Shown piece by piece: positions 1 through 24,772 of a stretch of DNA of 25,577 nucleotides (positions within the stretch are counted from its first letter, which is position 1; every line of letters starts with the position of its first letter). The position numbers were made by a program, and so were the translations under genes. The stretch covers positions 1-25,577 of the forward strand of contig CAXIUT010000065.1 of the NCBI GenBank assembly GCA_964035545.1, in the 5' to 3' direction. This DNA is from Bugula neritina. Lineage: Eukaryota; Animalia; Bryozoa. The notes below the pieces were generated by a model. It was not told the DNA's origin. It saw only the letters and a program-made list of their open reading frames with translations, and did no database searches.

Positions 1-383
1 ATGCGGGGCAGGGCGGCTGACTGGCTGCATTGCTCCAGGAGCTTGTTGACGGTGCTGCGGGCGAGGGGGCTTCCACGCTCGGACACAAAGAGCCAGGGCA
101 GCTCACTCTCACGCTCTCGAAGGTAACGCCTGAGAAGCCTCAGTTCGTCACCAGCAATCGGGTGCATCCCGTCGATCCCGTTCTTGGATCGCTTCACGAA
201 TACCGTGGCCTGATCGAGGTTCAACCGCTCAAGCTTGATATGGCAGAGCTCCGACACGCGCAGGCCGTGGCGGTAGAGCATCAGAATGATCAGCTCGTTG
301 CGAGCTGGATTTCTGGTCTTTCGTGCTGTTTTACGTAGGGCCTCGACCTCACTGGCCGTGACCCAGTTTTTCACCTTGTTCAT
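1..383 (-). CDS. Tyrosine recombinase, 5' part (cut by window edge; full copy at 17653..18192)
   Basis: Same sequence as 17810..18192; MNKVKNW start. Confidence 0.85.
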   Translation of the reverse strand, partial: MNKVKNWVTASEVEALRKTARKTRNPARNELIILMLYRHGLRVSELCHIKLERLNLDQATVFVKRSKNGIDGMHPIAGDELRLLRRYLRERESELPWLFVSERGSPLARSTVNKLLEQCSQSAALPR

Positions 384-466
384 GAAACTTTCTACAAAAT
401 ATAAGCTGACGTCCTGTCTGAGCCTTCCTGAAAGCCTAACAAAATAGGGCAGGGGGGTTACAGAAC

Positions 467-494
467 ATTCAACATTATATACATAATGTAGAAT
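467..494. other. Symmetric dif-like tyrosine recombinase core site (11-6-11)
   Basis: ATTCAACATTA-TATACA-TAATGTAGAAT; inverted arms with 1 mismatch, extendable to 464..497. The minus strand reads TGTATA TAATGTTGAAT versus E. coli dif TGTATA TTATGTTAAAT. Lies directly upstream of the recombinase gene. Confidence 0.7.
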
Positions 495-520
495 GTTTAA
501 AGCTCTGGCGAGAGAAAATT

Positions 521-548
521 TTGACATCCAAATAAGTATGTATATAAT
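521..548 (+). promoter_or_regulatory. Sigma70-type promoter of the TA-Fic operon
   Basis: TTGACA-N16-TATAAT, 24 nt upstream of ATG 573. Confidence 0.75.
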
Positions 549-572
549 AGTGGTGTAATTTAATATGGTGAT

Positions 573-842
573 ATGCAAACTATGGGAAATGTAAAGAGAA
601 CCTTCACCCTTCCTGATGAGGTGAGCCAGGAACTTGATGAAGTGATCCCAAATAGGGAGCGTTCAAAGTTTATCGCAATGACTTTGCAGGAGGCTTTGCG
701 TCAGAAAAAACGTGATGAGCTTATGAAGCTTCTAGATGATCTGCCGCGTGATAAATCTCTGGATGGGGTGCAGGCAGAGGATGTGCTGCGCGAAATCCGC
801 GATACCCGCGCCGATGAAATACTTTCTAACTCTCGCCCATGA
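573..842 (+). CDS. CopG/ribbon-helix-helix antitoxin (VapB-like)
   Basis: KRTFTLPDEVSQELD...RSKFIAMTLQEAL RHH pattern; ATGA overlap with the PIN gene. Confidence 0.85.
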   Translation: MQTMGNVKRTFTLPDEVSQELDEVIPNRERSKFIAMTLQEALRQKKRDELMKLLDDLPRDKSLDGVQAEDVLREIRDTRADEILSNSRP

Positions 843-1285
843 AGCATAAAATCATAGTACCCGATGCAAATGTCGCAGTAAAAATTCTCCACACTGAAGC
901 TGACACTGAACAAGCTCGTGCCCTGTTTCGTTCCTGCGCAGAGCACGGAACCAAGATTTTGGTCCCTGAGCATTTTCTCTATGAAGTGGTGAATGTATGC
1001 CAGCGTGTCAAAGTTGGGGTTGATGATGTTCTGGACTTCTACGAAGCATTGAGATCGTCAATTCTTACCGTGGTATCTCCGAACCGGGATATCTGGCAGA
1101 GAGCTGAACAGATTGCTCAAGATGGGCATCCAAACAGTGGCTTTCCATCGATCTATGACAGTATCTACCAAGCACTCGCGCTTGATGCTGGGGGCGTCTT
1201 TATAACTGCTGATAAACGCCACGTTGCAAAAACCCATCAACATGGTGGGGTGATGTTGCTCAGTGATTGGGCAGACGACAAATAA
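839..1285 (+). CDS. vapC: PIN-domain toxin (VapC family)
   Basis: IVPDANVAVK, YEVVNV, SIYDSIYQALA and FITADKR carry the acidic PIN motifs. Confidence 0.9.
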   Translation: MKHKIIVPDANVAVKILHTEADTEQARALFRSCAEHGTKILVPEHFLYEVVNVCQRVKVGVDDVLDFYEALRSSILTVVSPNRDIWQRAEQIAQDGHPNSGFPSIYDSIYQALALDAGGVFITADKRHVAKTHQHGGVMLLSDWADDK

Positions 1286-1297
1286 CCATGCGATACT

Positions 1298-2296
1298 ATG
1301 AAAAACGATAGAAAAATTACATCTTTGGATCTGACGGAACCGATGGTTCCAATAAGCCCGAAGCAAAAAGAGGAGCTTGTGCAGCTGCGCGAGCGTTTTA
1401 TTCAATTAGTTTCTAAAATTATGAACGCTGAAAGTTTTGATCTTACTCAGGTCTATCCAGATACCGAAGACCTTGGCGAATTGTATGACCAACTTGATGA
1501 CTTAAAAAAATGCCTGGACAGCTTCAGACCATTCAATCCTGCTCAAGTGAAAAACCTCCGTGAGGTATATGATACTGAATACACGTACGCGTCTAACAGG
1601 ATCGAGGGAAATACTCTTACGCTCCAGGAGACCAGTTTTGTTATCAATGAAGGTCTGACGATCAGCAACAAGCCGATGAAGGATCATATTGAGGCGATCA
1701 ATCATAAAGTAGCCATCGACTTCATGCGCGAGCTTGCTGACCAGAATGAACCTATTAGTGAGCGAAACATCAAGCTGATACACGCACTGATTTTGCAGGG
1801 TATAGACCGTCAAGAGGCTGGAAAATATCGCGATGTGGTAGTTGGGATACGTGCTACTGATATCGTCTTCCCAGAACCCTTCATGGTTCCTGATCTTATG
1901 CGTGATCTCATAGACTTCTATGAAGAGCATAAGGACGAGTTTCACCCAGTGAAACTTGCGGCGCAGATGCACGCTAGGCTGGTGAATATCCATCCGTTCA
2001 TTGATGGAAATGGACGCACTTGCCGCTTGGTAATGAATCTAATTTTGTTGCAAAACGGTTATCCACTCACAATTTTTGCACCTGACGCGGATGCAAGACA
2101 GACATATTTTGATGCGCTCAACCAGACACGCGACACTGAAGATCAATCACACTTCGAGCTCTTCGCGGCAAAAAATGTCAAACGATGGGCGATGGAATAC
2201 CTCTCGATGCTTGCCCCGAATATCGGGGAAAACGAACAAAAAAAAGGCTACTACTACTTCAAGAAAGTCGAGCCATATCTACGGCATACAAAATAA
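1298..2296 (+). CDS. Fic family protein (class II, intramolecular inhibitory helix)
   Basis: Catalytic motif HPFIDGNGRTCR; inhibitory motif SNRIEGN N-terminal to it. Confidence 0.95.
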   Translation: MKNDRKITSLDLTEPMVPISPKQKEELVQLRERFIQLVSKIMNAESFDLTQVYPDTEDLGELYDQLDDLKKCLDSFRPFNPAQVKNLREVYDTEYTYASNRIEGNTLTLQETSFVINEGLTISNKPMKDHIEAINHKVAIDFMRELADQNEPISERNIKLIHALILQGIDRQEAGKYRDVVVGIRATDIVFPEPFMVPDLMRDLIDFYEEHKDEFHPVKLAAQMHARLVNIHPFIDGNGRTCRLVMNLILLQNGYPLTIFAPDADARQTYFDALNQTRDTEDQSHFELFAAKNVKRWAMEYLSMLAPNIGENEQKKGYYYFKKVEPYLRHTK

Positions 2297-2302
2297 CCAA
2301 AC

Positions 2303-2330
2303 TTTCAACATTATATTTATTTTGTGGAAA
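2303..2330. other. Second, hybrid/degenerate dif-like site
   Basis: TTTCAACATTA-TATTTA-TTTTGTGGAAA; left arm plus TA matches 468..479 (ttcaacattata); 6 nt after the Fic stop. Confidence 0.5.
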
Positions 2331-2404
2331 AGGCAAAAGAAATGGGTGTCTCAAGAGGAACCGTCTACAAAGCAACTGCCCAATTTATAATCTCCGGCCT
2401 TTAA
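2324..2404 (+). pseudogene. C-terminal HTH remnant of a serine resolvase/invertase
   Basis: Translates VEKAKEMGVSRGTVYKATAQFIISGL*, a Hin/resolvase-type recognition helix with no catalytic N-terminus. Confidence 0.6.
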
Positions 2405-2452
2405 CCTGATTTGTTTGCGGGGATGATAACACCCCTCACGCCTGCCAAAATC

Positions 2453-3481
2453 TTACTTCAAAAACTCTGCCAATACGGCCGCTTCGTATGCCTTAACGCT
2501 CATCCGTGCTGACGGGCCATAGCTTTCGAAGCCCGTCTCCAACTGTGGGAACAGCTCAAGGATTTCGTTGCGCGTTGCTACATCCAGCGCGGACCAACCC
2601 ATTTCACCTGGGTGGAAGCTTTCTGTGGCAGACCCTTCGGCAAAGATGATCTCGTGTTGATCGAACAGGATGTGGAAATATTCCACTTCGCCGCCTTCGT
2701 CACGGGTAATCGTTTTGTCGTTGATCAGGGCCTTGGCAGGGGCCAAAACTTCGGCCTCGCCAAAGAGCAGCTCTGCACGCCATCCTTCCAGAACCATACG
2801 GTGCTGAGGAGAGACGCGAAGATCACGGGTGTTGCCCAATGTGCCTGCGGCGATCTTGATTGGGGCCAGTTTGCCAAGGGCCGCGCGTTTGGTGGATCCG
2901 ATCCAGCGGATTGGCTGCATCCCATTGTCGCGGGTGCGCACCATCATGCCTTCGGCCAGATCCTGCACGGCAACTTCGCCTTGATTCGTGTCAATCATCG
3001 TGTCGCGGGCAAAGCAGACGGCGGTTAAAGACGCATTATCAAGTGTAAATACGTCAGCGCCATTAGTGGACCCAATTCTAATGCCTGTGATATCGGATGC
3101 TGCTGTGAAAGTGATCGTTGCCGTTTGGTAATCAAGACCAGCACTATAAACTGCATCAAAAGTTCCCAGCACATTGCCGTCTTGATCTTGCAAACTCAGT
3201 TGAGAATCGCTTCCTGAACTGCGGCTCCCGGCATCATAGTCAATTGTAAATGTATATTCGGTGCCTGTCGTCAGTGGGGTTGTTAAGGTCTGCTCCATCA
3301 TTTCCCCTATGACCATAACCCAGTCATCCCCGTCCGTGGCCCCACCTGGCGCACCCATGCTGGTTAGGCCTCGGTTCAAGTCAGCTGTTCCAACAGCATT
3401 TGTCCATTCAGGTGGAGCTGTGCTGTATACCACGCCTGTGTGTGGGCCTTCGAAGCTGCCATTTCTAAGTAGTTCAGTCAT
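2453..3481 (-). CDS. Hint-domain protein copy 1 (N-terminal carbohydrate-binding-like jelly roll + Hint_2/BIL domain)
   Basis: Hint starts at C156 (VCFARDTMIDT); LRVSPQHR block; YFHILFDQHEIIFAEG..TESFHPG; N-domain runs LLRNGSFE...LDNASL; RBS AAGGA. Confidence 0.92.
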   Translation of the reverse strand: MTELLRNGSFEGPHTGVVYSTAPPEWTNAVGTADLNRGLTSMGAPGGATDGDDWVMVIGEMMEQTLTTPLTTGTEYTFTIDYDAGSRSSGSDSQLSLQDQDGNVLGTFDAVYSAGLDYQTATITFTAASDITGIRIGSTNGADVFTLDNASLTAVCFARDTMIDTNQGEVAVQDLAEGMMVRTRDNGMQPIRWIGSTKRAALGKLAPIKIAAGTLGNTRDLRVSPQHRMVLEGWRAELLFGEAEVLAPAKALINDKTITRDEGGEVEYFHILFDQHEIIFAEGSATESFHPGEMGWSALDVATRNEILELFPQLETGFESYGPSARMSVKAYEAAVLAEFLK

Positions 3482-3733
3482 TTGTTGTATCCTTCTTTCA
3501 CCTTAAACAGGCTTCAACATGATGTGTCAGATTTAGATCATTCACTTTAGTGATCGTGTGCTTCTCTTTCCTCGAAACGGATCATTAATTAATCTTTAGT
3601 TTTTAATTTGGGCAGATTTGTAATCGAATTTGGGCGTGCTTGTGGTCAAATTTGGACCAGTGAGGCCAATGGGCAGATATTAGGTGGCTCAAGCTTAGAG
3701 CGTTTCAACCGTAACCGCCTAAGGTTGGATACC

Positions 3734-3763
3734 AAAAAAGGGCGGCCCTTGGGCCGCCCTTTT
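3734..3763. terminator. Bidirectional intrinsic terminator downstream of Hint copy 2
   Basis: aaaaaaGGGCGGCCcttgGGCCGCCCtttt; gives a U6 tract on the minus strand. Confidence 0.85.
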
Positions 3764-3807
3764 GAAACTACGAAACGTTTCGCTTTTAATCTGATTTGTT
3801 GTGGAGA

Positions 3808-3842
3808 TTGGAGTGTAGCCAATTCAATTGACTACACCCCAA
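3808..3842 (-). other. Long palindromic hairpin (REP-like) in the 3' UTR of Hint copy 2
   Basis: ttggagtgtagccaatt-c-aattgactacaccccaa; both mismatches become G.U pairs on the minus strand. Confidence 0.65.
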
Positions 3843-3872
3843 GACGCAATAAACCCCACTGCTACCAAGATC

Positions 3873-4901
3873 TTACTTCAAAAACTCTGCCAACACGGCC
3901 GCTTCGTATGCCTTAACGCTCATCCGCGCGGACTGACCATAGCTTTCGAAGTCCGTCTCCAACTGTGGGAACAGTTCAAGGATTTCGTTGCGCGTTGCGG
4001 CATCCAGTGCGGACCAGCCCATTTCACCTGGGTGAAAGCTTTCTGTGGCAGACCCTTCGGCAAAGATGATCTCGTGTTGATCGAACAGGATGTGGAAATA
4101 TTCCACCTGACCGCCTTCGTCACGGGTAATCGTTTTGTCGTTGATCAGGGCCTTGGCAGGGGCCAAAACTTCGGCCTCGCCAAAGAGCAGCTCTGCACGC
4201 CATCCTTCCAGAACCATACGGTGCTGAGGAGAGACGCGAAGATCACGGGTGTTGCCCAATGTGCCTGCGGCGATCTTGATTGGGGCCAGTTTGCCAAGGG
4301 CCGCGCGTTTGGTGGATCCGATCCAGCGGATTGGCTGCATCCCATTGTCGCGGGTGCGCACCATCATGCCTTCGGCCAGATCCTGCACGGCAACTTCGCC
4401 TTGATTCGTGTCAATCATCGTGTCGCGGGCAAAGCAGACGGCGGTTAAAGACGCATTATCAAGTGTAAATACGTCAGCGCCATTAGTGGACCCAATTCTA
4501 ATGCCTGTGATATCGGATGCTGCTGTGAAAGTGATCGTTGCCGTTTGGTAATCAAGACCAGCACTATAAACTGCATCAAAAGTTCCCAGCACATTGCCGT
4601 CTTGATCTTGCAAACTCAGTTGAGAATCGCTTCCTGAACTGCGGCTCCCGGCATCATAGTCAATTGTAAATGTATATTCGGTGCCTGTCGTCAGTGGGGT
4701 TGTTAAGGTCTGCTCCATCATTTCCCCTATGACCATAACCCAGTCATCCCCGTCCGTGGCCCCACCTGGCGCACCCATGCTGGTTAGGCCTCGGTTCAAG
4801 TCAGCTGTTCCAACAGCATTTGTCCATTCAGGTGGAGCTGTGCTGTATACCACGCCTGTGTGTGGGCCTTCGAAGCTGCCATTTCTAAGTAGTTCAGTCA
4901 T
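3873..4901 (-). CDS. Hint-domain protein copy 2
   Basis: 342 aa; differs from copy 1 at 4 C-terminal residues. Confidence 0.92.
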   Translation of the reverse strand: MTELLRNGSFEGPHTGVVYSTAPPEWTNAVGTADLNRGLTSMGAPGGATDGDDWVMVIGEMMEQTLTTPLTTGTEYTFTIDYDAGSRSSGSDSQLSLQDQDGNVLGTFDAVYSAGLDYQTATITFTAASDITGIRIGSTNGADVFTLDNASLTAVCFARDTMIDTNQGEVAVQDLAEGMMVRTRDNGMQPIRWIGSTKRAALGKLAPIKIAAGTLGNTRDLRVSPQHRMVLEGWRAELLFGEAEVLAPAKALINDKTITRDEGGQVEYFHILFDQHEIIFAEGSATESFHPGEMGWSALDAATRNEILELFPQLETDFESYGQSARMSVKAYEAAVLAEFLK

Positions 4902-5153
4902 TTGTTGTATCCTTCTTTCACCTTAAACAGGCTTCAACATGATGTGTCAGATTTAGATCATTCACTTTAGTGATCGTGTGCTTCTCTTTCCTCGAAACGG
5001 ATCATTAATTAATCTTTAGTTTTTAATTTGGGCAGATTTGTAATCGAATTTGGGCGTGCTTGTGGTCAAATTTGGACCAGTGAGGCCAATGGGCAGATAT
5101 TAGGTGGCTCAAGCTTAGAGCGTTTCAACCGTAACCGCCTAAGGTTGGATACC

Positions 5154-5183
5154 AAAAAAGGGCGGCCCTTGGGCCGCCCTTTT
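5154..5183. terminator. Bidirectional intrinsic terminator downstream of Hint copy 3
   Basis: Identical to 3734..3763. Confidence 0.85.
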
Positions 5184-5227
5184 GAAACTACGAAACGTTT
5201 CGCTTTTAATCTGATTTGTTGTGGAGA

Positions 5228-5262
5228 TTGGAGTGTAGCCAATTCAATTGACTACACCCCAA
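5228..5262 (-). other. Palindromic hairpin in the 3' UTR of Hint copy 3
   Basis: Identical to 3808..3842. Confidence 0.65.
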
Positions 5263-5292
5263 GACGCAATAAACCCCACTGCTACCAAGATC

Positions 5293-6321
5293 TTACGACA
5301 AAAACTCTGCCAATACGGCAGCTTCTTGTCCCTTAACGCTCATCCGTGCTGCCAGGCCATAGCTGTCGAAATCAGTTTCCAGCTCTGGGAACAGCTCAAG
5401 GATTTCGTTGCGCGTTGCGGCATCCAGTGCGGACCAGCCCATTTCACCTGGGTGAAAGCTTTCTGTGGCAGACCCTTCGGCAAAGATGATCTCGTGTTGA
5501 TCGAACAGGATGTGGAAATATTCCACTTCGCCGCCTTCGTCACGGGTAATCGTTTTGTCGTTGATCAGGGCCTTGGCAGGGGCCAAAACTTCGGCCTCGC
5601 CAAAGAGCAGCTCTGCACGCCATCCTTCCAGAACCATACGGTGCTGAGGAGAGACGCGAAGATCACGGGTGTTGCCCAATGTGCCTGCGGCGATCTTGAT
5701 TGGGGCCAGTTGGCCTCGGGCCGCGCGTTTGGTGGATCCGATCCAGCGGATTGGCTGCATCCCATTGTCGCGGGTGCGCACCATCATGCCTTCGGCCAGA
5801 TCCTGCACGGCAACTTCGCCTTGATTCGTGTCAATCATCGTGTCGCGGGCAAAGCAGACGGCGGTTAAAGACGCATTATCAAGTGTAAATACGTCAGCGC
5901 CATTAGTGGACCCAATTCTAATGCCTGTGATATCGGATGCTGCTGTGAAAGTGATCGTTGCCGTTTGGTAATCAAGACCAGCACTATAAACTGCATTAAA
6001 AGTTCCCAGCACATTGCCGTCTTGATCTTGCAAACTCAGTTCAGAATCGGCTGGTGTACTGCGGCTCCCGGAATCATAGTCAATTGTAAATGTATATTCG
6101 GTGCCTGTCGTCAGTGGGGTTGATAAAGTTTGCTCTATCATTTCCCCTGCGATCCAAATCCAGTCATCCCCGTCCGTGGCCCCACCTGGCGTGCCCATGC
6201 TGGGTACGCCTCGGTTCAAGTCAGCTGTTCCAACAGCATTTGTCCATTCAGGTGGAGCTGTGCTGTATTCCACGCCTGTGTGTGGGCCTTCGAAGCTGCC
6301 ATTTCTAAGTAGTTCAGTCAT
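5293..6321 (-). CDS. Hint-domain protein copy 3 (divergent N-domain)
   Basis: 342 aa; 16 substitutions in residues 18-109 versus copies 1/2. Confidence 0.92.
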   Translation of the reverse strand: MTELLRNGSFEGPHTGVEYSTAPPEWTNAVGTADLNRGVPSMGTPGGATDGDDWIWIAGEMIEQTLSTPLTTGTEYTFTIDYDSGSRSTPADSELSLQDQDGNVLGTFNAVYSAGLDYQTATITFTAASDITGIRIGSTNGADVFTLDNASLTAVCFARDTMIDTNQGEVAVQDLAEGMMVRTRDNGMQPIRWIGSTKRAARGQLAPIKIAAGTLGNTRDLRVSPQHRMVLEGWRAELLFGEAEVLAPAKALINDKTITRDEGGEVEYFHILFDQHEIIFAEGSATESFHPGEMGWSALDAATRNEILELFPELETDFDSYGLAARMSVKGQEAAVLAEFLS

Positions 6322-6392
6322 TTGTTGTATCCTTGTCTAATATAACACTATGGCGAGACCTTTATGCGCAAATATCCGTCTGCACAAGCCAG

Positions 6393-6413
6393 TCATATCG
6401 ATAATCGATATGA
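6393..6413. promoter_or_regulatory. Perfect palindromic operator candidate in the divergent promoter region
   Basis: TCATATCGAT-A-ATCGATATGA. Confidence 0.55.
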
Positions 6414-6434
6414 TGATTAATGGATATATTTACG

Positions 6435-6479
6435 AGATATGCTATTTACAGTTTTGCAAGATATGCCATTTTACAGTTT
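6435..6479 (+). repeat. Imperfect 20/21-bp direct repeat upstream of the NusA-NTD-like gene
   Basis: agatatgctatttacagttt (6435) and agatatgccattttacagttt (6459). Confidence 0.6.
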
Positions 6480-6506
6480 ATTATCCCTAAAAAGAAGGAA
6501 ATGTAG

Positions 6507-6923
6507 ATGGATATGCTAAAAAATACTGGCCCTATCGACCTGAACACGCGGGCCGATTTGCGTCCACACATCGAAAATTATGCATCAGACAATGATATGA
6601 CATTTGATGACGCATTAGATCGAATCAGCACCCTATATGTGCAGGCCGCCCATTCGGTTCATGGATCCCAATATGATTTTCGCGCCACATTGAATGACGT
6701 AGGGCAAATCAAGCTGTTGCAGGTGTTAACTGTCGTAAGCACCGTAACAGACGAGGATCGGCAAGTATCTCTGACCAATGCCCGAAAAACCTATCCAAAT
6801 ATTGAATTGGGCGGGTATATTTTGAACCAGATCACCCCTGTGGAACCTGAAGGCTTATTCGATACTCCTGCGACACAAACTATAACAGTTAAAGGCATGA
6901 CCTTAAAACCTGTTCGCGGCTAA
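6507..6923 (+). CDS. Stand-alone NusA N-terminal-domain-like protein
   Basis: QAAHSVHGSQYDFRATLNDVGQIKLLQVLTVVSTVTD..RQVSLTNARKTYPNIELGGYILNQITP aligns by eye with the alphaproteobacterial NusA-NTD pattern (KAARSRYG..NIRA.I...GEI.L.R.L.VVE.VED...QI.L..AR...P..LGDFI...LPP). No S1/KH domains; RBS AAGGA. Confidence 0.7.
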   Translation: MDMLKNTGPIDLNTRADLRPHIENYASDNDMTFDDALDRISTLYVQAAHSVHGSQYDFRATLNDVGQIKLLQVLTVVSTVTDEDRQVSLTNARKTYPNIELGGYILNQITPVEPEGLFDTPATQTITVKGMTLKPVRG

Positions 6924-6926
6924 GGC

Positions 6927-6958
6927 TACGTCTGCGACCCTTGCGGGCCGCAGACGTA
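6927..6958. terminator. Stem-loop directly after the NusA-NTD-like gene
   Basis: tacgtctgcg-acccttgcgggc-cgcagacgta; no strong U tract on the + strand. Confidence 0.5.
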
Positions 6959-6963
6959 AAGCC

Positions 6964-7128
6964 ATGCTTGGCTCATCGCCTCCAGCAGCCTGTTATTGTG
7001 CCGCACAGGATTATATCCCAATCGTGATCACGCGATCCGGGGACAAGACCTCTGCCGTGCTTATTTCACTGGCCGAATACGAATCATTGGTGAAAACACA
7101 GCATCTTTTAAAACATCGGGTTAAGTAG
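6964..7128 (+). pseudogene. Phd/YefM antitoxin remnant
   Basis: 7000..7113 translates AAQDYIPIVITRSGDKTSAVLISLAEYESLVKTQHLLK, the YefM core; the N-terminal strand/helix, the C-terminus and the toxin are missing. Confidence 0.65.
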
Positions 7129-7762
7129 AGGCGATGGAGGGGCCGGGATGGTCTATCCAGGCAACGGCAATGCTGTCATCTGCCGCGCGATGGGGAATGG
7201 CATAGCCTTGCGCTGTTTTCAGTGCTGGGTTTTGCCGCGCGGCGCGCAGTCCTTCTGTGAGCCCCCCCGATCTGATCAGCGCACGCTCTTCGGCATCCGC
7301 AGTGGATGTGAGCCAGGCATTGAGGTGGCGCAGCATATCCGCTTGGGTACTGACCCCAAGGGCTGCGAAAGCAATAGGCTCATCGACAAGGCGCAGCACT
7401 TCGCCAATTCGGGTTCTGTCCGTTGCCTCAACAATCTCTAGCTGCCCTTGTTCGGTAAAGGCGCACAGGATGACCGTCTGCTTCTTGGTGATTTGCGGCA
7501 AGAGTGTGGATAATTCTTCAACCGCCCGTGGCGGGGGGGATGCGTCTTTAAGCATGTCCATCGTGGTATGCGTGATCAACCATGCGTTGTCACCCAGCCG
7601 CATTCTGACCCATCCTGCCTCACGCAGATTATTCAGCGCGCGCCAAATACCCATACGGGACAGCTCGGGCAGAGCACTTTGCAAGTCTCTCAAAGCCACT
7701 GGAGCATTTTGCGCGACGGCGCGATAAACTGCCAAAGTGCGGGTGGTTGGGGTGCCGGCCAT
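7121..7762 (-). CDS. IclR-like winged-HTH transcriptional regulator
   Basis: RTLAVYRAVAQNAPVALRDLQSALPELSRMGIWRALNNLREAGWV is an IclR-type HTH; degenerate C-terminal effector domain; start site uncertain. Confidence 0.65.
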   Translation of the reverse strand: MAGTPTTRTLAVYRAVAQNAPVALRDLQSALPELSRMGIWRALNNLREAGWVRMRLGDNAWLITHTTMDMLKDASPPPRAVEELSTLLPQITKKQTVILCAFTEQGQLEIVEATDRTRIGEVLRLVDEPIAFAALGVSTQADMLRHLNAWLTSTADAEERALIRSGGLTEGLRAARQNPALKTAQGYAIPHRAADDSIAVAWIDHPGPSIAST

Positions 7763-8056
7763 ATTGGGAAACACTTTTTTTGGGGGTCGTTTGCACATTG
7801 TTGCACAAATCTGGGAGTACTAGAACCTGACGTCCGGAAAATTTGTCAGAGGGTTACATTTGCCTGTCGGGCACGCATGCAAATGCATCTCAGCTCCAGC
7901 CAGACCAGTCACGACCGCATTGCTTTAGTGTCGTGGTGTACGCTACCAAGGCCCACTCGTTAATTGTGCAAAAAAAACCGTTCATGCTCAGATCTAAGCA
8001 TATACATATTTGTTACAACTATACTACCCTCCCTATTTTCCGGTACTCCGTTAGAA

Positions 8057-8629
8057 ATGGACGAAACTTTCCTTCTCGCCATAAACGCCTCGATCTTGTG
8101 GGGCGTTTATGTTGGCCTGCTGACTTGGCTCTTGCGCTTCAAAACACTGGTGTTGGTCCTGCTGCTGGCTCCTTTAGTGATCGGGTCCACTTTCCGGCAC
8201 ATTGCCGGGATGCCAGAGTTGATCGGCTTCTACGGCACGTCGCTGCTTTATGGCGCTCCGGGTATCATCGCTGGTATGCTCTACGCGGATTATCAGCGGA
8301 CGAAGGCATATTTCGCCCGTATTTCAAAGACCTCATTCCTTGCCCGTGGCGGGATCGGGCTGTCATCGGTGTATCTGCTGGGGTATTTCGGACAGAAGAT
8401 CATTTTTGAGAACCCAATGGTCGAACTGGTTCTTGGTTACATCAAGGGTGGGGACCGTGCGAAAGAGATCGTCTCCCGGGTCGATTATGACGGGGCGCTC
8501 ACTGCTGGCGGGGTCATTGTGGCTTGTGCGGGGGTGCTCGCCTTCAATACTTACCGGGAACACCGCAGGGCAGGGCCGGAAAACGTCCCAGCCATCAAAG
8601 AAGAACAAGAAACAGGCATTTCCTCATGA
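8057..8629 (+). CDS. Polytopic membrane protein (about 5 TM), function unknown
   Basis: Several hydrophobic segments; probable start MDETFLL; ATGA overlap with the next gene. Confidence 0.75.
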   Translation: MDETFLLAINASILWGVYVGLLTWLLRFKTLVLVLLLAPLVIGSTFRHIAGMPELIGFYGTSLLYGAPGIIAGMLYADYQRTKAYFARISKTSFLARGGIGLSSVYLLGYFGQKIIFENPMVELVLGYIKGGDRAKEIVSRVDYDGALTAGGVIVACAGVLAFNTYREHRRAGPENVPAIKEEQETGISS

Positions 8630-9660
8630 AGAACCCCAAGCTCATTTTTGCCATTGTCCTTGGCGTGGTTTTCTGCTTCGCAGGCTATAACCTCTGGTCC
8701 TATTTCAAGGAACAACAGGCCATCCAGCTCGAAGAGGATCGTCTGGCCGAAGAGCGCCGGGTCCAGCGCGAACAGGAACGGCAAGCTCAGATCACAGCGG
8801 AAGAAGAAGAACGTCGCCAGCGTGAAGCTGAGGCTGAAGCGCGGCGTTTGGAAGAGGAACGCCTTGCTGAAGAACGGCGTCTGGCCCGGGAAGCTGAAGA
8901 AGAAGCCCGTCGCCAAGAGGCTGAACGCCTACGGGCAGAACAAGAAGCCGAACGGCTCGCAGAACGTATTTCCCGCGCTCGCACCGTTGAGCGGATCGAA
9001 GAGGTTCCCCAGGAACTGATAGACCAGATGAACGGTCTGTCCCGTCGCTACATTGCCGATCATCCCTACGAATTCCTGACCCAGACTTTCGATGGCAGAA
9101 CCTTTGGGCCTCGCACGAATTTCGAAAAGCTGATCCAAGGCGACACTGATGCCTTGATGCTGGTCTCCGCAATTTCAGGGAACACCAAGCACCTGGAAGC
9201 GCTGATCGGCATTGGTATGGATATAAACCGGGGGAATGAAGCAGGTTACACGCCACTCATGTTCGCTGCCGCATACAACACGCCAGAAGTCGTCAGTTTT
9301 CTGGTGGGGCAGGGGGCAGATATTTCAGCCAAGGCCTATGTCCAGGACCTGACCCCATTGCATGTAGCCGCGCTCTTCAACCCGAACCCCGATGTGATCA
9401 ACGCCCTGGTCGATGCTGGTGCTGATCTTGAGGCGGTCACAGAAACCCCCATGACACCCCTTCTACTGGCCTGCTCAGACAACCAAAATCTGGAAGTCGC
9501 TGAACGGCTCGCGGAGCTGGGGGCCGACATTGAAGCCTATTCCCCCGATGGCCTCACAACCAAGGGATTGTGTGAACAACGTATCCGTGGGGAAGGGGAT
9601 CGGTACATCAAGATCACCGATGAGGTGAATGAGCGTATTTTGAGCCGCCTCACGCCATAG
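8626..9660 (+). CDS. Membrane-anchored coiled-coil + ankyrin-repeat protein
   Basis: MKNPKLIFAIVLGVVFCFAGY anchor; E/R/A-rich helix; repeats GYTPLMFAA, LTPLHVAA, MTPLLLAC with ..GAD ends. Confidence 0.88.
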   Translation: MKNPKLIFAIVLGVVFCFAGYNLWSYFKEQQAIQLEEDRLAEERRVQREQERQAQITAEEEERRQREAEAEARRLEEERLAEERRLAREAEEEARRQEAERLRAEQEAERLAERISRARTVERIEEVPQELIDQMNGLSRRYIADHPYEFLTQTFDGRTFGPRTNFEKLIQGDTDALMLVSAISGNTKHLEALIGIGMDINRGNEAGYTPLMFAAAYNTPEVVSFLVGQGADISAKAYVQDLTPLHVAALFNPNPDVINALVDAGADLEAVTETPMTPLLLACSDNQNLEVAERLAELGADIEAYSPDGLTTKGLCEQRIRGEGDRYIKITDEVNERILSRLTP

Positions 9661-9994
9661 ACATCACTGGGTCGGCTTCCCATCCTTCTGACATTGCCAG
9701 TGCGTCCTCGCTGTCGAGGGTGCGCATGGCGTCGGTGCAGGTCTGGATGATTTCAGCGGCTTCACACATATCGTCAGCTCCGCTTCCCACGAGCTCGGTC
9801 AAATCATGAATGACTGACGCGTCAGTTTTCACGGTCATATGGAAATTATCATTGATCAGGTAAGATGCCATACCGTGCAAAGCCATGAGCTGATCGCGCA
9901 TATCATCAATCTGATAGCCCAGCTGATCGAGCTTATCTATCGCAGTCAGGAACTGCCACGTATCGAACTCCTCTGAACAAAGCTCGGCCCGCAT
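9650..9994 (-). pseudogene. TnpC-like (Tn4652-type transposase regulator) protein, probably 5'-truncated
   Basis: FDTWQFLTAIDKLD...RDQLMALHGMASYLIN resembles the TnpC family motif; the usual N-terminus is absent and there is no room for a promoter. Confidence 0.5.
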
Positions 9995-10008
9995 TAACGC
10001 TCTGCTCG

Positions 10009-10275
10009 ATGCTGACGATTAAGCTATCCAAGCGAGCGGACAAAGCGCTCGGTAAAATACAAACCAAGCAAGCGAAACAGATTGCTGCACGTATCAAACA
10101 GTTGGCTGACGATTCAGAAGCTTTGCCTACGGTCGAGCTGAAAGGATACGCGCCATGGCGGCGAGCAAAGTCCGGTGAATACCGTATCATCTACAAGATT
10201 GATGGGGATATTTTGAGTGTTGCCTTGGTTGGTAAGCGCAACGACGATGAGATTTACCGCCTCATTGAACCATGA
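10009..10275 (+). CDS. relE: RelE/ParE family toxin (orphan)
   Basis: IKLSKRADKALGKI...LKGYAPWRRAKSGEYRIIYKI...VGKRNDDEIY. Confidence 0.88.
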   Translation: MLTIKLSKRADKALGKIQTKQAKQIAARIKQLADDSEALPTVELKGYAPWRRAKSGEYRIIYKIDGDILSVALVGKRNDDEIYRLIEP

Positions 10276-10685
10276 GAGCTGACCAAGCAAAAACCATCCC
10301 CCTTGATCTCTATCTTGAGCACCAGGGGTACAAACCCGCAAAAACCCGAATGGGTGGGCGCGAGCTTTGGTATAAGAGCCCCATTCGCAGCGGTGACAGC
10401 TCTCCATCCTTCAAAGTCGATACCATCATCAACAAATGGTACGATCACGGCATTGGGCGTGCTGGCAACACACTCGATCTTGCTGTTGAACTATGCTGTT
10501 CTTCCGTTCGTGACGCTCTGCGTCACTTGGAACGCACCGGGTTGTACTCACCTTACGGATATCGCCAGGCATCCAACCCCACGCACCTGCCGGAGCTATT
10601 GGATCAAAAACGAGCTGCTATTGAAAAAGAAAAAGATGATGGCACGGCACTGAAGCTGCTTCACAAAGGGCCGGTCAAGCACCCT
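10272..10685 (+). pseudogene. DNA primase-like (CHC2-like + Toprim) gene, 5' part, interrupted by transposon
   Basis: ELWYKSPIR..DSSPSFKVD...WYDHGIGRAGNTLDL; the frame continues after the TSD as HP|ALLQYLDKRKI. Confidence 0.85.
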
Positions 10686-10723
10686 GGGGTCGAGTGGGGC
10701 TGAGTGCAGAAAACCCCGTTAAG
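10686..10723 (+). repeat. Tn3 left inverted repeat
   Basis: GGGGTCGAGTGGGGCTGAGTGCAGAAAACCCCGTTAAG. Confidence 0.95.
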
Positions 10724-10758
10724 GGTTTTGGCGGGCGTTTGAAATTTGAGATTGGCTC

Positions 10759-11310
10759 TCAGGTCTCGTTCGTTGCGAGATATCGATAGATGGTAGCCTT
10801 TGAGAGGCTGTAGTGAGCCATCAGGTCTTTGATCAGCGTTCCAGCTGCGCGCCTTTGGCGAAGCTCAGCGATCTGATCTTCTGAAAGCGCGGGCCGTTTG
10901 CCAAACTGAACGCCGCGATCCTTCGCCTTTTTGATCCCGTCCATTTGACGCTCGGCACGGATTTCGGTTTCGAACTGTCCGATGGCACCAAGCATGTTGA
11001 ACAGGAGCCGCCCGGTTGCGTCGGATGTGTCGATGTTCTGATCGAGGACGACCAGATCGACGCCTTTCTCGCGCAGGGTCTCGGCGATCTGACACAGGTG
11101 TAGCGTTGAGCGCGCCAATCGGTCGATGCGCGTGACGATGAGTTGATCTCCGCCGCGGATGTAATTCAGGCACTCTTTCAGCTGAGGGCGGGCATCGGTC
11201 GTGCCACTGCGCTTCTCTTCGAAGAGCTTGTCGCAGCTATCCAGCTTTTCGCGCTGCACGTCCAGAGATTGTCCAACAGAACTGACGCGGGCGTATCCGA
11301 CTTTGGCCAT
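10759..11310 (-). CDS. tnpR: Serine resolvase
   Basis: GYARVSS, RPQL, TRIDRLARS, C-terminal HTH SKATIYRYL. Confidence 0.95.
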   Translation of the reverse strand: MAKVGYARVSSVGQSLDVQREKLDSCDKLFEEKRSGTTDARPQLKECLNYIRGGDQLIVTRIDRLARSTLHLCQIAETLREKGVDLVVLDQNIDTSDATGRLLFNMLGAIGQFETEIRAERQMDGIKKAKDRGVQFGKRPALSEDQIAELRQRRAAGTLIKDLMAHYSLSKATIYRYLATNET

Positions 11311-11434
11311 GGGTTCTCATTTAGGTTTTGGATTTGTGCGACATCCATATTGAGACATTGAAAAAGACATGGCAAGCGGATGGTCTCAGTTTCTACAGTT
11401 TTAAAGACCCTCCTCTGACAGAAAGACGATCCCC
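11311..11434. promoter_or_regulatory. Probable res site / divergent promoters
   Basis: Lies between divergent tnpR and tnpA; tctca/tgaga half-site-like motifs; subsites not resolved. Confidence 0.5.
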
Positions 11435-14368: not shown

Positions 14369-14373
14369 ACCCT

Positions 14374-20261: not shown

Positions 20262-21290
20262 TTACTTCAAAAACTCTGCCAATACGGCCGCTTCGTATGC
20301 CTTAACGCTCATCCGTGCTGACGGGCCATAGCTTTCGAAGCCCGTCTCCAACTGTGGGAACAGCTCAAGGATTTCGTTGCGCGTTGCTACATCCAGCGCG
20401 GACCAACCCATTTCACCTGGGTGGAAGCTTTCTGTGGCAGACCCTTCGGCAAAGATGATCTCGTGTTGATCGAACAGGATGTGGAAATATTCCACTTCGC
20501 CGCCTTCGTCACGGGTAATCGTTTTGTCGTTGATCAGGGCCTTGGCAGGGGCCAAAACTTCGGCCTCGCCAAAGAGCAGCTCTGCACGCCATCCTTCCAG
20601 AACCATACGGTGCTGAGGAGAGACGCGAAGATCACGGGTGTTGCCCAATGTGCCTGCGGCGATCTTGATTGGGGCCAGTTTGCCAAGGGCCGCGCGTTTG
20701 GTGGATCCGATCCAGCGGATTGGCTGCATCCCATTGTCGCGGGTGCGCACCATCATGCCTTCGGCCAGATCCTGCACGGCAACTTCGCCTTGATTCGTGT
20801 CAATCATCGTGTCGCGGGCAAAGCAGACGGCGGTTAAAGACGCATTATCAAGTGTAAATACGTCAGCGCCATTAGTGGACCCAATTCTAATGCCTGTGAT
20901 ATCGGATGCTGCTGTGAAAGTGATCGTTGCCGTTTGGTAATCAAGACCAGCACTATAAACTGCATCAAAAGTTCCCAGCACATTGCCGTCTTGATCTTGC
21001 AAACTCAGTTGAGAATCGCTTCCTGAACTGCGGCTCCCGGCATCATAGTCAATTGTAAATGTATATTCGGTGCCTGTCGTCAGTGGGGTTGTTAAGGTCT
21101 GCTCCATCATTTCCCCTATGACCATAACCCAGTCATCCCCGTCCGTGGCCCCACCTGGCGCACCCATGCTGGTTAGGCCTCGGTTCAAGTCAGCTGTTCC
21201 AACAGCATTTGTCCATTCAGGTGGAGCTGTGCTGTATACCACGCCTGTGTGTGGGCCTTCGAAGCTGCCATTTCTAAGTAGTTCAGTCAT
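20262..21290 (-). CDS. Hint-domain protein copy 1 (duplicate)
   Basis: Identical to 2453..3481. Confidence 0.92.
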   Translation of the reverse strand: MTELLRNGSFEGPHTGVVYSTAPPEWTNAVGTADLNRGLTSMGAPGGATDGDDWVMVIGEMMEQTLTTPLTTGTEYTFTIDYDAGSRSSGSDSQLSLQDQDGNVLGTFDAVYSAGLDYQTATITFTAASDITGIRIGSTNGADVFTLDNASLTAVCFARDTMIDTNQGEVAVQDLAEGMMVRTRDNGMQPIRWIGSTKRAALGKLAPIKIAAGTLGNTRDLRVSPQHRMVLEGWRAELLFGEAEVLAPAKALINDKTITRDEGGEVEYFHILFDQHEIIFAEGSATESFHPGEMGWSALDVATRNEILELFPQLETGFESYGPSARMSVKAYEAAVLAEFLK

Positions 21291-21542
21291 TTGTTGTATC
21301 CTTCTTTCACCTTAAACAGGCTTCAACATGATGTGTCAGATTTAGATCATTCACTTTAGTGATCGTGTGCTTCTCTTTCCTCGAAACGGATCATTAATTA
21401 ATCTTTAGTTTTTAATTTGGGCAGATTTGTAATCGAATTTGGGCGTGCTTGTGGTCAAATTTGGACCAGTGAGGCCAATGGGCAGATATTAGGTGGCTCA
21501 AGCTTAGAGCGTTTCAACCGTAACCGCCTAAGGTTGGATACC

Positions 21543-21572
21543 AAAAAAGGGCGGCCCTTGGGCCGCCCTTTT
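21543..21572. terminator. Intrinsic terminator (duplicate)
   Basis: Same as 3734..3763. Confidence 0.85.
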
Positions 21573-21681
21573 GAAACTACGAAACGTTTCGCTTTTAATC
21601 TGATTTGTTGTGGAGATTGGAGTGTAGCCAATTCAATTGACTACACCCCAAGACGCAATAAACCCCACTGCTACCAAGATC

Positions 21682-22710
21682 TTACTTCAAAAACTCTGCC
21701 AACACGGCCGCTTCGTATGCCTTAACGCTCATCCGCGCGGACTGACCATAGCTTTCGAAGTCCGTCTCCAACTGTGGGAACAGTTCAAGGATTTCGTTGC
21801 GCGTTGCGGCATCCAGTGCGGACCAGCCCATTTCACCTGGGTGAAAGCTTTCTGTGGCAGACCCTTCGGCAAAGATGATCTCGTGTTGATCGAACAGGAT
21901 GTGGAAATATTCCACCTGACCGCCTTCGTCACGGGTAATCGTTTTGTCGTTGATCAGGGCCTTGGCAGGGGCCAAAACTTCGGCCTCGCCAAAGAGCAGC
22001 TCTGCACGCCATCCTTCCAGAACCATACGGTGCTGAGGAGAGACGCGAAGATCACGGGTGTTGCCCAATGTGCCTGCGGCGATCTTGATTGGGGCCAGTT
22101 TGCCAAGGGCCGCGCGTTTGGTGGATCCGATCCAGCGGATTGGCTGCATCCCATTGTCGCGGGTGCGCACCATCATGCCTTCGGCCAGATCCTGCACGGC
22201 AACTTCGCCTTGATTCGTGTCAATCATCGTGTCGCGGGCAAAGCAGACGGCGGTTAAAGACGCATTATCAAGTGTAAATACGTCAGCGCCATTAGTGGAC
22301 CCAATTCTAATGCCTGTGATATCGGATGCTGCTGTGAAAGTGATCGTTGCCGTTTGGTAATCAAGACCAGCACTATAAACTGCATCAAAAGTTCCCAGCA
22401 CATTGCCGTCTTGATCTTGCAAACTCAGTTGAGAATCGCTTCCTGAACTGCGGCTCCCGGCATCATAGTCAATTGTAAATGTATATTCGGTGCCTGTCGT
22501 CAGTGGGGTTGTTAAGGTCTGCTCCATCATTTCCCCTATGACCATAACCCAGTCATCCCCGTCCGTGGCCCCACCTGGCGCACCCATGCTGGTTAGGCCT
22601 CGGTTCAAGTCAGCTGTTCCAACAGCATTTGTCCATTCAGGTGGAGCTGTGCTGTATACCACGCCTGTGTGTGGGCCTTCGAAGCTGCCATTTCTAAGTA
22701 GTTCAGTCAT
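21682..22710 (-). CDS. Hint-domain protein copy 2 (duplicate)
   Basis: Identical to 3873..4901. Confidence 0.92.
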   Translation of the reverse strand: MTELLRNGSFEGPHTGVVYSTAPPEWTNAVGTADLNRGLTSMGAPGGATDGDDWVMVIGEMMEQTLTTPLTTGTEYTFTIDYDAGSRSSGSDSQLSLQDQDGNVLGTFDAVYSAGLDYQTATITFTAASDITGIRIGSTNGADVFTLDNASLTAVCFARDTMIDTNQGEVAVQDLAEGMMVRTRDNGMQPIRWIGSTKRAALGKLAPIKIAAGTLGNTRDLRVSPQHRMVLEGWRAELLFGEAEVLAPAKALINDKTITRDEGGQVEYFHILFDQHEIIFAEGSATESFHPGEMGWSALDAATRNEILELFPQLETDFESYGQSARMSVKAYEAAVLAEFLK

Positions 22711-22962
22711 TTGTTGTATCCTTCTTTCACCTTAAACAGGCTTCAACATGATGTGTCAGATTTAGATCATTCACTTTAGTGATCGTGTGCTTCTCTTTCC
22801 TCGAAACGGATCATTAATTAATCTTTAGTTTTTAATTTGGGCAGATTTGTAATCGAATTTGGGCGTGCTTGTGGTCAAATTTGGACCAGTGAGGCCAATG
22901 GGCAGATATTAGGTGGCTCAAGCTTAGAGCGTTTCAACCGTAACCGCCTAAGGTTGGATACC

Positions 22963-22992
22963 AAAAAAGGGCGGCCCTTGGGCCGCCCTTTT
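22963..22992. terminator. Intrinsic terminator (duplicate)
   Basis: Same as 5154..5183. Confidence 0.85.
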
Positions 22993-23101
22993 GAAACTAC
23001 GAAACGTTTCGCTTTTAATCTGATTTGTTGTGGAGATTGGAGTGTAGCCAATTCAATTGACTACACCCCAAGACGCAATAAACCCCACTGCTACCAAGAT
23101 C

Positions 23102-24130
23102 TTACGACAAAAACTCTGCCAATACGGCAGCTTCTTGTCCCTTAACGCTCATCCGTGCTGCCAGGCCATAGCTGTCGAAATCAGTTTCCAGCTCTGGGAA
23201 CAGCTCAAGGATTTCGTTGCGCGTTGCGGCATCCAGTGCGGACCAGCCCATTTCACCTGGGTGAAAGCTTTCTGTGGCAGACCCTTCGGCAAAGATGATC
23301 TCGTGTTGATCGAACAGGATGTGGAAATATTCCACTTCGCCGCCTTCGTCACGGGTAATCGTTTTGTCGTTGATCAGGGCCTTGGCAGGGGCCAAAACTT
23401 CGGCCTCGCCAAAGAGCAGCTCTGCACGCCATCCTTCCAGAACCATACGGTGCTGAGGAGAGACGCGAAGATCACGGGTGTTGCCCAATGTGCCTGCGGC
23501 GATCTTGATTGGGGCCAGTTGGCCTCGGGCCGCGCGTTTGGTGGATCCGATCCAGCGGATTGGCTGCATCCCATTGTCGCGGGTGCGCACCATCATGCCT
23601 TCGGCCAGATCCTGCACGGCAACTTCGCCTTGATTCGTGTCAATCATCGTGTCGCGGGCAAAGCAGACGGCGGTTAAAGACGCATTATCAAGTGTAAATA
23701 CGTCAGCGCCATTAGTGGACCCAATTCTAATGCCTGTGATATCGGATGCTGCTGTGAAAGTGATCGTTGCCGTTTGGTAATCAAGACCAGCACTATAAAC
23801 TGCATTAAAAGTTCCCAGCACATTGCCGTCTTGATCTTGCAAACTCAGTTCAGAATCGGCTGGTGTACTGCGGCTCCCGGAATCATAGTCAATTGTAAAT
23901 GTATATTCGGTGCCTGTCGTCAGTGGGGTTGATAAAGTTTGCTCTATCATTTCCCCTGCGATCCAAATCCAGTCATCCCCGTCCGTGGCCCCACCTGGCG
24001 TGCCCATGCTGGGTACGCCTCGGTTCAAGTCAGCTGTTCCAACAGCATTTGTCCATTCAGGTGGAGCTGTGCTGTATTCCACGCCTGTGTGTGGGCCTTC
24101 GAAGCTGCCATTTCTAAGTAGTTCAGTCAT
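23102..24130 (-). CDS. Hint-domain protein copy 3 (duplicate)
   Basis: Identical to 5293..6321. Confidence 0.92.
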   Translation of the reverse strand: MTELLRNGSFEGPHTGVEYSTAPPEWTNAVGTADLNRGVPSMGTPGGATDGDDWIWIAGEMIEQTLSTPLTTGTEYTFTIDYDSGSRSTPADSELSLQDQDGNVLGTFNAVYSAGLDYQTATITFTAASDITGIRIGSTNGADVFTLDNASLTAVCFARDTMIDTNQGEVAVQDLAEGMMVRTRDNGMQPIRWIGSTKRAARGQLAPIKIAAGTLGNTRDLRVSPQHRMVLEGWRAELLFGEAEVLAPAKALINDKTITRDEGGEVEYFHILFDQHEIIFAEGSATESFHPGEMGWSALDAATRNEILELFPELETDFDSYGLAARMSVKGQEAAVLAEFLS

Positions 24131-24315
24131 TTGTTGTATCCTTGTCTAATATAACACTATGGCGAGACCTTTATGCGCAAATATCCGTCTGCACAAGCCA
24201 GTCATATCGATAATCGATATGATGATTAATGGATATATTTACGAGATATGCTATTTACAGTTTTGCAAGATATGCCATTTTACAGTTTATTATCCCTAAA
24301 AAGAAGGAAATGTAG

Positions 24316-24732
24316 ATGGATATGCTAAAAAATACTGGCCCTATCGACCTGAACACGCGGGCCGATTTGCGTCCACACATCGAAAATTATGCATCAGACA
24401 ATGATATGACATTTGATGACGCATTAGATCGAATCAGCACCCTATATGTGCAGGCCGCCCATTCGGTTCATGGATCCCAATATGATTTTCGCGCCACATT
24501 GAATGACGTAGGGCAAATCAAGCTGTTGCAGGTGTTAACTGTCGTAAGCACCGTAACAGACGAGGATCGGCAAGTATCTCTGACCAATGCCCGAAAAACC
24601 TATCCAAATATTGAATTGGGCGGGTATATTTTGAACCAGATCACCCCTGTGGAACCTGAAGGCTTATTCGATACTCCTGCGACACAAACTATAACAGTTA
24701 AAGGCATGACCTTAAAACCTGTTCGCGGCTAA
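24316..24732 (+). CDS. Stand-alone NusA-NTD-like protein (duplicate)
   Basis: Identical to 6507..6923. Confidence 0.7.
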   Translation: MDMLKNTGPIDLNTRADLRPHIENYASDNDMTFDDALDRISTLYVQAAHSVHGSQYDFRATLNDVGQIKLLQVLTVVSTVTDEDRQVSLTNARKTYPNIELGGYILNQITPVEPEGLFDTPATQTITVKGMTLKPVRG

Positions 24733-24772
24733 GGCTACGTCTGCGACCCTTGCGGGCCGCAGACGTAAAGCC

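Follow-up and report, generated by a model that had tools for sequence, protein, structure and literature searches.

A stand-alone NusA N-terminal domain paralog linked to Hint_2 genes in the roseobacter group

The contig CAXIUT010000065.1 of the Bugula neritina assembly GCA_964035545.1, one of 321 contigs in an assembly of 216 Mb, was analysed over its whole length of 25,577 nucleotides, which is referred to here as the window. This DNA contains a small gene that encodes a stand-alone paralog of the NusA N-terminal domain (mini-NusA), which is arranged divergently from a tandem array of three genes encoding Hint_2 proteins. The mini-NusA and Hint_2 genes form a real, co-inherited, and previously undescribed two-gene module. 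The functional coupling of the two genes is strongly supported, given their linkage in all of the clusters that could be read, the mirrored topologies of the two gene trees, and the position of the unlinked Hint_2 paralogs outside the linked clades. The window itself is a roseobacter-type circular plasmid of 17.8 kb, and the coordinates of its features are collected in Table 1.

Linkage of mini-NusA and Hint_2

A sequence-only reading of this DNA had described the NusA-like gene as divergent from the third Hint copy, with a shared region of 185 bp, and the coordinates bear this out. The same reading had let its proposal depend on whether homologs of the NusA-like gene are linked to Hint genes elsewhere, and they are. 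In nine of the nine mini-NusA clusters with readable flanks, a Hint_2 gene is located either in the same operon or in a divergently adjacent position. The clusters P0007, P0009, and P0015, which lie on contigs too short to judge, were left out of this count.

The order of the two genes varies among the loci. They are divergent in the window and in P0014 (168-bp gap), and mini-NusA is located upstream, on the same strand, in P0002 (48-nt gap) and P0004 (73-nt gap). It is also upstream in G198 (L051 8169-10128; also L012), which is nearly identical to P0003 and is probably a Planktomarina. Here, a GNAT acetyltransferase gene (Acetyltransf_3) is found between mini-NusA and Hint_2, and the three genes overlap or abut. 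In four clusters (P0005/G001, P0006, P0008, and P0018), mini-NusA is located downstream and overlaps the Hint_2 stop codon by 1-4 nt. At P0001, mini-NusA is divergent from a gene cut by the end of the contig, the N-terminus of which is 40% identical to the cargo domain of the window protein and is followed by RTX repeats. The flanking genes vary among all the distinct loci, and every other linked locus examined has a single linked Hint_2 gene, with no tandem array.

The abundance of the Hint_2 genes does not explain this linkage, given that G001 has nine of these genes and G198 has four, with only one being linked in each case. Approximately one gene in 500-800 is a Hint_2 gene, and a random gene would be found within two genes of one in less than 1% of cases. 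The clusters share ancestry and do not represent nine independent trials; the weight of the linkage lies in the fact that the adjacency has persisted while identity fell to approximately 25-35% and the gene order was rearranged at least three times.

The two mini-NusA subclades match two clades of the Hint-domain tree, as well as the types of gene order. Clade I includes the window copies, G198, and the partners of P0014 and P0004, while clade II is made up of the four overlap-type partners (99/97 support); the P0002 partner is placed on a long, unresolved branch. Both linked clades exclude the 13 unlinked Hint_2 paralogs, which were taken from these genomes and from plasmids. With a profile built on the cargo domain of clade I, the partners of P0002 and P0001 score 98-99 bits, clade II is matched only marginally, and the matches to the unlinked paralogs are unconvincing (best E 0.01). 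The partners of subclade B all carry a cargo domain of the NGSFE type, which the unlinked paralogs lack.

An exhaustive HMMER scan of 1.84 billion representative proteins recovered 36 matches to mini-NusA, approximately 20 of which are stand-alone proteins of 113-151 aa, with 29-42% identity to the query, the remainder being pieces of canonical NusA or noise. In the tree, one branch with 99/99 support sets the mini-NusA proteins apart from the N-terminal domains of canonical NusA, and the mini-NusA proteins are divided into two subclades; the sequence is nearest to alphaproteobacterial NusA. The named members, from Ruegeria, Planktomarina temperata, Ascidiaceihabitans, Shimia, Sulfitobacter, and metagenome-assembled genomes of the Paracoccaceae, all belong to the roseobacter group, and the databases give them no label other than “NusA N-terminal domain-containing protein” or “hypothetical”. 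One cluster contains 123 sequences, with all its named members being Planktomarina temperata. Cultivable carriers include Ruegeria sp. ANG-R, HKCCD4884, and Sulfitobacter sp. F26204. Carriers are rare: the family to which Ruegeria sp. ANG-R belongs was represented by 401 species genomes, in which two clear carriers of mini-NusA were found, together with one more genome with a second match, and canonical NusA was seen in 387 of the 401. A word-index protein search with mini-NusA found no relatives, and a tblastn search of 72,556 plasmids with three family members found no mini-NusA, but only canonical nusA on mislabelled chromosomes. No paper on NusA paralogs consisting of the N-terminal domain alone was found in the literature searched, nor any dedicated small partner for Hint_2 or BIL proteins.

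The mini-NusA and Hint proteins

The mini-NusA protein matches the Pfam NusA_N profile (PF08529) with 37.7 bits (gathering cut-off 23.8, E 2.8e-9), and its homologs P0001-P0014 match the profile as well. Its match to the full-length model TIGR01953 covers only model positions 5-97 of 340, with 34.3 bits against a cut-off of 253.4. The AlphaFold2 model has a predicted local distance difference test score (pLDDT) above 90 for residues 15-115, the last 25 residues being disordered, and the top 17 matches of the protein in a Foldseek search of the PDB are all NusA. The order of the helices and strands is that of the NusA N-terminal domain, and the protein shares the alpha/beta fold, with its body and globular head, of the known structures of this domain (E. 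coli 2KWP, B. subtilis 2MT4, and T. maritima 1HH2). The model ends before the linker helix alpha4, the motif of which is also absent, and the S1 and the two KH domains of full-length NusA are lacking, the protein standing alone at 138 aa. Its gene is found beside Hint_2, and not in the rimP-nusA-infB operon.

Compared with NusA column by column, the family no longer conserves alpha1, and the alpha4 motif is missing entirely. The conserved acidic residues of the NusA head have been replaced (E81->T, D91->N, and D107->N, together with T85->R), and Y56, F58, and Q72 are new invariant residues of the family. The positions that correspond to the polymerase contacts L27, L31, I43, and V45 of E. coli NusA (PMC4642336) are occupied by I40, Y44, Y56, and F58, respectively, all hydrophobic or aromatic. 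The hydrophobic patch for the tip of the beta flap is thus kept, which is indirect evidence of a possible flap binding. The family also has a conserved C-terminal motif of its own (hydrophobic-x-N-hydrophobic-x-hydrophobic), which is predicted to be disordered in the monomer. No consistent basic charge of the RNA-binding type was found in the family, in which the isoelectric point ranges from 4.6 to 9.9 and is uninformative. A lysine in the tail of mini-NusA was considered as an acceptor for Hint ligation and was rejected, as the position is not conserved in subclade A.

The three Hint genes are 342-aa open reading frames (ORFs) on the minus strand, each of which matches Pfam Hint_2 (PF13403) with an E of 1e-51 to 1e-52. 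The protein is composed of an N-terminal domain similar to a carbohydrate-binding module (CBM; residues 1-155), a Hint_2/BIL domain that begins at Cys156, and a helical C-terminal tail with the motif E-L-x-x-L-F-P-E-L. The AlphaFold2 model (pLDDT 76) has a corresponding N-terminal beta-sandwich, for which the best Foldseek matches are the HpiC1/Stig cyclases, CBM4, and CBM16, followed by a Hint part that matches the BIL2 domain 6tmm, and then the helical tail. Across 19 homologs, S224, H227, H270, and H276 do not vary and C156, with which the Hint domain opens, is nearly invariant; S224 and H227 form what we take to be a block-B-type motif. These conserved residues fit a putative N-terminal autocleavage like that of Hedgehog or BIL proteins, by analogy with what is known of the family.

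The order of the protein, with a cargo, a Hint domain that begins with a cysteine, and a short tail, is that of the BIL and Hedgehog Hint proteins, from which it differs in its CBM-like beta-sandwich cargo, in the small partner gene, and in the lack of any N-terminal signal peptide recognisable by inspection. No toxin family was found in the protein in Pfam, NCBIfam, or PHROGs. Hint_2 proteins are common in the Rhodobacterales, with 4-9 per genome in the genomes included here, and no functional study of these proteins in the roseobacters was found in the literature searched. At the P0004 locus, the Hint_2 gene is followed directly by a gene encoding a protein with an H-type lectin domain (L013 11814-12260), which fits a theme of glycan binding outside the cell.

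The array, its control regions, and the plasmid

The tandem array has a period of 1420 bp. The sequence-only reading had noted three co-oriented Hint genes separated by identical spacers, each with a hairpin and a strong terminator. This description holds, given that the two spacers are identical at 391 of 391 positions and the elements have been located in both; units 1 and 2 share a stretch of 1186 nt without a single mismatch. Copy 3 is 92% identical to copies 1 and 2, with the changes being concentrated in the N-terminal domain and the C-terminal tail. In the cargo codons 18-109, copies 3 and 2 differ by 16 nonsynonymous and three synonymous changes, and the Hint core is nearly invariant, a pattern that fits either diversifying selection acting on the cargo or gene conversion in patches.

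Each spacer has a 17-bp perfect hairpin soon after the stop codon, followed by a GC-rich stem-loop and a U tract, as expected of an intrinsic terminator. The 3' flank of copy 1 is homologous to the spacer for approximately 95 nt and diverges before the terminator, and it lacks the 35-nt insert that, in the spacers, carries most of the 17-bp hairpin. This hairpin may be a small inserted palindromic element. The terminators within the array look like by-products of the duplication of a gene together with its own terminator. Three CCAAATT motifs with a 22-nt phase are found in each spacer (3605-3655 and 5025-5075), approximately 150 nt upstream of copies 1 and 2, and could represent a row of protein-binding sites or belong to a promoter or operator that has gone unrecognised. 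Upstream of copy 3, the DNA is homologous to the spacer for only 13 nt before the ATG, and copies 1 and 2 therefore did not inherit the upstream region of copy 3. In a simple sigma-70 scan, a single promoter-like site was directed towards copy 3 and the spacers had none, the total number of sites being equal to that expected by chance.

The divergent region between copy 3 and mini-NusA contains a 19-bp perfect palindrome and two direct repeats. Exactly the same palindrome is present in the divergent gap of P0001 (L007-L009; L007 1951-1969), which is the closest homologous locus, even though the flanks have diverged almost wholly and the proteins are only approximately 40% identical. This points to an ordinary dimeric DNA-binding regulator, for which the palindrome would probably be the operator at the divergent promoters.

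The scan for cis elements took in the leaders, the gaps between genes, and the 3' flanks, the coding regions not being searched. Within this scope, no terminator or stable hairpin was found in the Hint leader, or in the gap separating mini-NusA from Hint_2, in the eight other loci, in which convincing terminators are located only at the ends of the module, and the terminator-punctuated layout is therefore specific to the array of this plasmid. No 8-mer is common across the loci, other than the palindrome shared with L007.

Table 1. Features of the window; positions are those of the 25,577-nucleotide stretch, and empty cells indicate that no value is given.
Feature	Position	Strand	Remarks
Unassigned ORF and PIN-domain gene	573-1285		ORF of 89 aa, overlapping the PIN-domain gene
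Fic	1298-2296		
Hint copy 1	2453-3481	-	342 aa, Pfam Hint_2 E 3.6e-51
Spacer 1	3482-3872	-	391 bp; hairpin, terminator, three CCAAATT
Hint copy 2	3873-4901	-	342 aa
Spacer 2	4902-5292	-	391 bp; hairpin, terminator, then approximately 250 nt of unassigned DNA ahead of copy 2
Hint copy 3	5293-6321	-	342 aa, nearest to the mini-NusA gene
17-bp perfect hairpin	5262-5226, 3842-3806	-	-22.3 kcal/mol; soon after the stop codon
Intrinsic terminator	5183-5150, 3763-3730	-	-24 kcal/mol; 12-bp GC-rich stem, 4-nt loop, T6
Divergent region between copy 3 and mini-NusA	6322-6506		185 bp
19-bp perfect palindrome	6394-6412		CATATCGAT-A-ATCGATATG
Two direct repeats	6436-6454, 6460-6479		GATATGCYATTT(T)ACAGTTT
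mini-NusA	6507-6923	+	138 aa, Pfam NusA_N; stand-alone NusA N-terminal domain paralog
14-bp inverted repeat	6927-6958	+	right after the mini-NusA stop, without a T tract
Phd/YefM antitoxin remnant	6964-7128		54 aa, truncated
225-aa protein	7121-7798		weak helix-turn-helix matches
Tn3-family unit region	8524-14335		includes the ankyrin-repeat protein
TnpC-like	9650-9994		
Resolvase	10759-11310		Tn3-family unit
TnpA	11435-14335		Tn3-family unit
Likely replication and partition region	14295-17441		Toprim-domain protein, 348-aa ORF, ParA
Module, second reading	20262..24767		offset +17809; not an independent copy
Tyrosine recombinase			profile match on the plasmid

A comparison of the window with itself shows that positions 1-7768 are 100% identical to positions 17810-25577, and no other offset comes near this value. 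The contig is therefore a circle of 17,809 bp, assembled 1.44 times over. The second array, at 20262-24732, is the same DNA of the circle read a second time, which means that there are three Hint copies, and not six. The gene set, as recognised by the Pfam and NCBIfam profile matches of the ORFs, is of the type found on small bacterial plasmids. At 216 Mb, the assembly far exceeds any bacterial genome in size, and neither a bacterial nusA nor a further Hint_2 gene is present in the rest of it; the plasmid is therefore a stray bacterial replicon.

Close relatives at the DNA level were found for the Tn3 part only, which is 87% identical to Sulfitobacter plasmids. The Tn3-family unit adjoins a gene for a 378-aa protein that combines ankyrin repeats with a charged coiled region, the repeats being an unusual cargo on a small bacterial plasmid. 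The 348-aa ORF has no family match and is possibly an initiator. At 6964-7128, only the C-terminal half of the Phd/YefM profile is matched and the adjoining toxin gene is absent, which gives the gene the appearance of a remnant.

Possible roles of mini-NusA

In a ranking of the possible roles, which reflects judgements and not measurements, a protein partner is placed slightly first, a polymerase factor second, and the control of readthrough in the array third. Mini-NusA may thus, tentatively, be regarded as a protein-level partner of the CBM-Hint precursor. The product of the Hint gene, which has been amplified to three tandem copies on this plasmid, would be a self-cleaving protein made up of the CBM-like cargo, a Hint_2 domain that begins at the catalytic cysteine, and the helical tail. 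Mini-NusA would work on this product, rather than on its transcript. It would be made together with the precursor and bind to it by way of two surfaces, the aromatic face of the former flap-binding patch, now re-tuned, and the disordered C-terminal strand motif, which would fold on binding. In this way, mini-NusA would escort or restrain the precursor, for example, by timing the self-cleavage of the Hint domain or its export. The identical spacers and terminators would be the result of a duplicated unit that carried the terminator of the gene with it.

A number of features are counted in favour of a protein partner. The overlap of the start and stop codons in four clusters suits translational coupling, and the operon of G198 includes a gene for a protein-modifying enzyme of the GNAT type. 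The loss of alpha1 conservation and alpha4, the replacement of the acidic head, and the new invariant residues are all counted as signs of a new partner, as is a C-terminal motif that is conserved and yet disordered. The lack of a shared cis element, terminator, or hairpin ahead of the linked Hint_2 genes elsewhere also favours a protein partner over a transcription factor. The module resembles the effector-chaperone and toxin-immunity pairs, in which the gene of a small protein is located tightly beside that of a probably exported, polymorphic protein, with overlaps in four clusters and co-diversification of the two. It differs from these pairs in having no recognisable toxin domain, no fixed gene order, and a small partner with an RNA-polymerase-binding fold, for which we know of no precedent in such pairs.

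Other points weigh against a protein partner. The sole known role of the NusA N-terminal domain, to our knowledge, is the binding of RNA polymerase at the beta flap, and paralogs of polymerase-binding domains usually retain the polymerase as their partner. The flap-contact positions of mini-NusA also remain hydrophobic or aromatic. No natural fusion of NusA_N and Hint_2 was found among the longer HMMER matches, which are pieces of canonical NusA or low-complexity noise, and the closest plasmid homologs of the window Hint protein (40-51% identity) have no mini-NusA neighbour. The tail of the Hint protein (E-L-x-x-LFP-E-L), which is similar to the flap-tip helix, was considered as a specific docking site and rejected, as the unlinked Hint_2 paralogs share it.

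The second reading, which is also held with less than even confidence, is that mini-NusA may be a NusA-derived, module-specific RNA-polymerase factor, which would still bind the tip of the beta flap and, lacking the linker helix and the RNA-binding S1/KH domains, would compete there with full-length NusA. Its effect would be less hairpin-dependent pausing or termination, or a change in initiation, with a preference for the neighbouring Hint unit. The genuine NusA_N homology, the NusA-like fold, and the hydrophobic residues kept at the flap contacts all argue for such a factor, and the position of the gene in subclade B, either first in the operon or divergent, is like that of LoaP and UpxY. 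A number of published findings point in the same direction. The NusA N-terminal domain alone is reported to be both needed and sufficient to enhance pausing (PMC4642336), the small flap-directed phage protein gp39 acts as an antiterminator (PMC3351154), and a NusG paralog is reported to act by antagonising NusA (PMC12691694).

Like RfaH, LoaP, and UpxY, mini-NusA is a paralog of a general elongation factor, reduced to its polymerase-binding part and encoded within or beside one set of genes. Unlike these proteins, it is derived from NusA and not from NusG, it has no ops-like element that could be found, and its targets would be single, short genes of approximately 1 kb, which need no processivity factor. 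In half of the family, moreover, the gene comes last, with its start overlapping the preceding stop codon, as in the four overlap-type clusters. The lack of a conserved leader terminator, hairpin, or recruitment motif across the loci also speaks against a polymerase factor, as do the changes in, or loss of, the acidic head, alpha1, and alpha4 of true NusA. A stricter version of this reading, in which mini-NusA would be the first locus-specific transcription factor built from NusA, that is, a flap-binding, RNA-blind NusA decoy located beside its target that locally overrides NusA-assisted pausing or termination, appears somewhat unlikely.

The sequence-only reading had proposed that mini-NusA sets the readthrough of the two inter-copy terminators, and thus the number of the three Hint variants that are expressed. 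This proposal has gained no comparative support, and is improbable, given that the tandem array and its terminators are found at this locus only. The start of the duplicated unit 13 nt upstream of the ATG, which left copies 1 and 2 without the promoter of copy 3, and the distribution of the sites in the sigma-70 scan are in keeping with it. A strong terminator with a 12-bp GC-rich stem and T6 is of the factor-independent type, however, and requires no NusA. The approximately 250 nt that follow the terminator, with their phased CCAAATT motifs, could also include a promoter or operator, and recent duplication or gene conversion is sufficient to explain the intact, nearly identical copies 1 and 2.

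That the adjacency is fortuitous, or that the 138-aa ORF is a decaying fragment of nusA without function, might be suggested by the plasmid junk around the gene, including the Phd/YefM remnant, and by the absence of close relatives from the word search and the plasmids, but is highly improbable, and is effectively refuted by the approximately 20 clusters of conserved length (one with 123 members), their single group apart from canonical NusA, the complete linkage to genes as infrequent as Hint_2, and the differences in the flanks throughout, which show that the linked loci are not copies of one recently spread element.

Specialised paralogs of NusG are well studied. In the case of NusA, no such paralogs were found in the literature searched, and mini-NusA represents a family made up of the NusA head alone, with a strict genomic partner. 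If mini-NusA is a polymerase factor, it would be a NusA-derived, gene-specific regulator of elongation, which would carry the principle behind RfaH, LoaP, and UpxY over from NusG to NusA, the other universal elongation factor. If, instead, it is a protein partner, an RNA-polymerase-binding fold would have been put to new use alongside a Hedgehog-like, self-cleaving protein as its partner. Both outcomes would be novel, and the pairing of the two genes provides the first experimental handle on the Hint_2 proteins.

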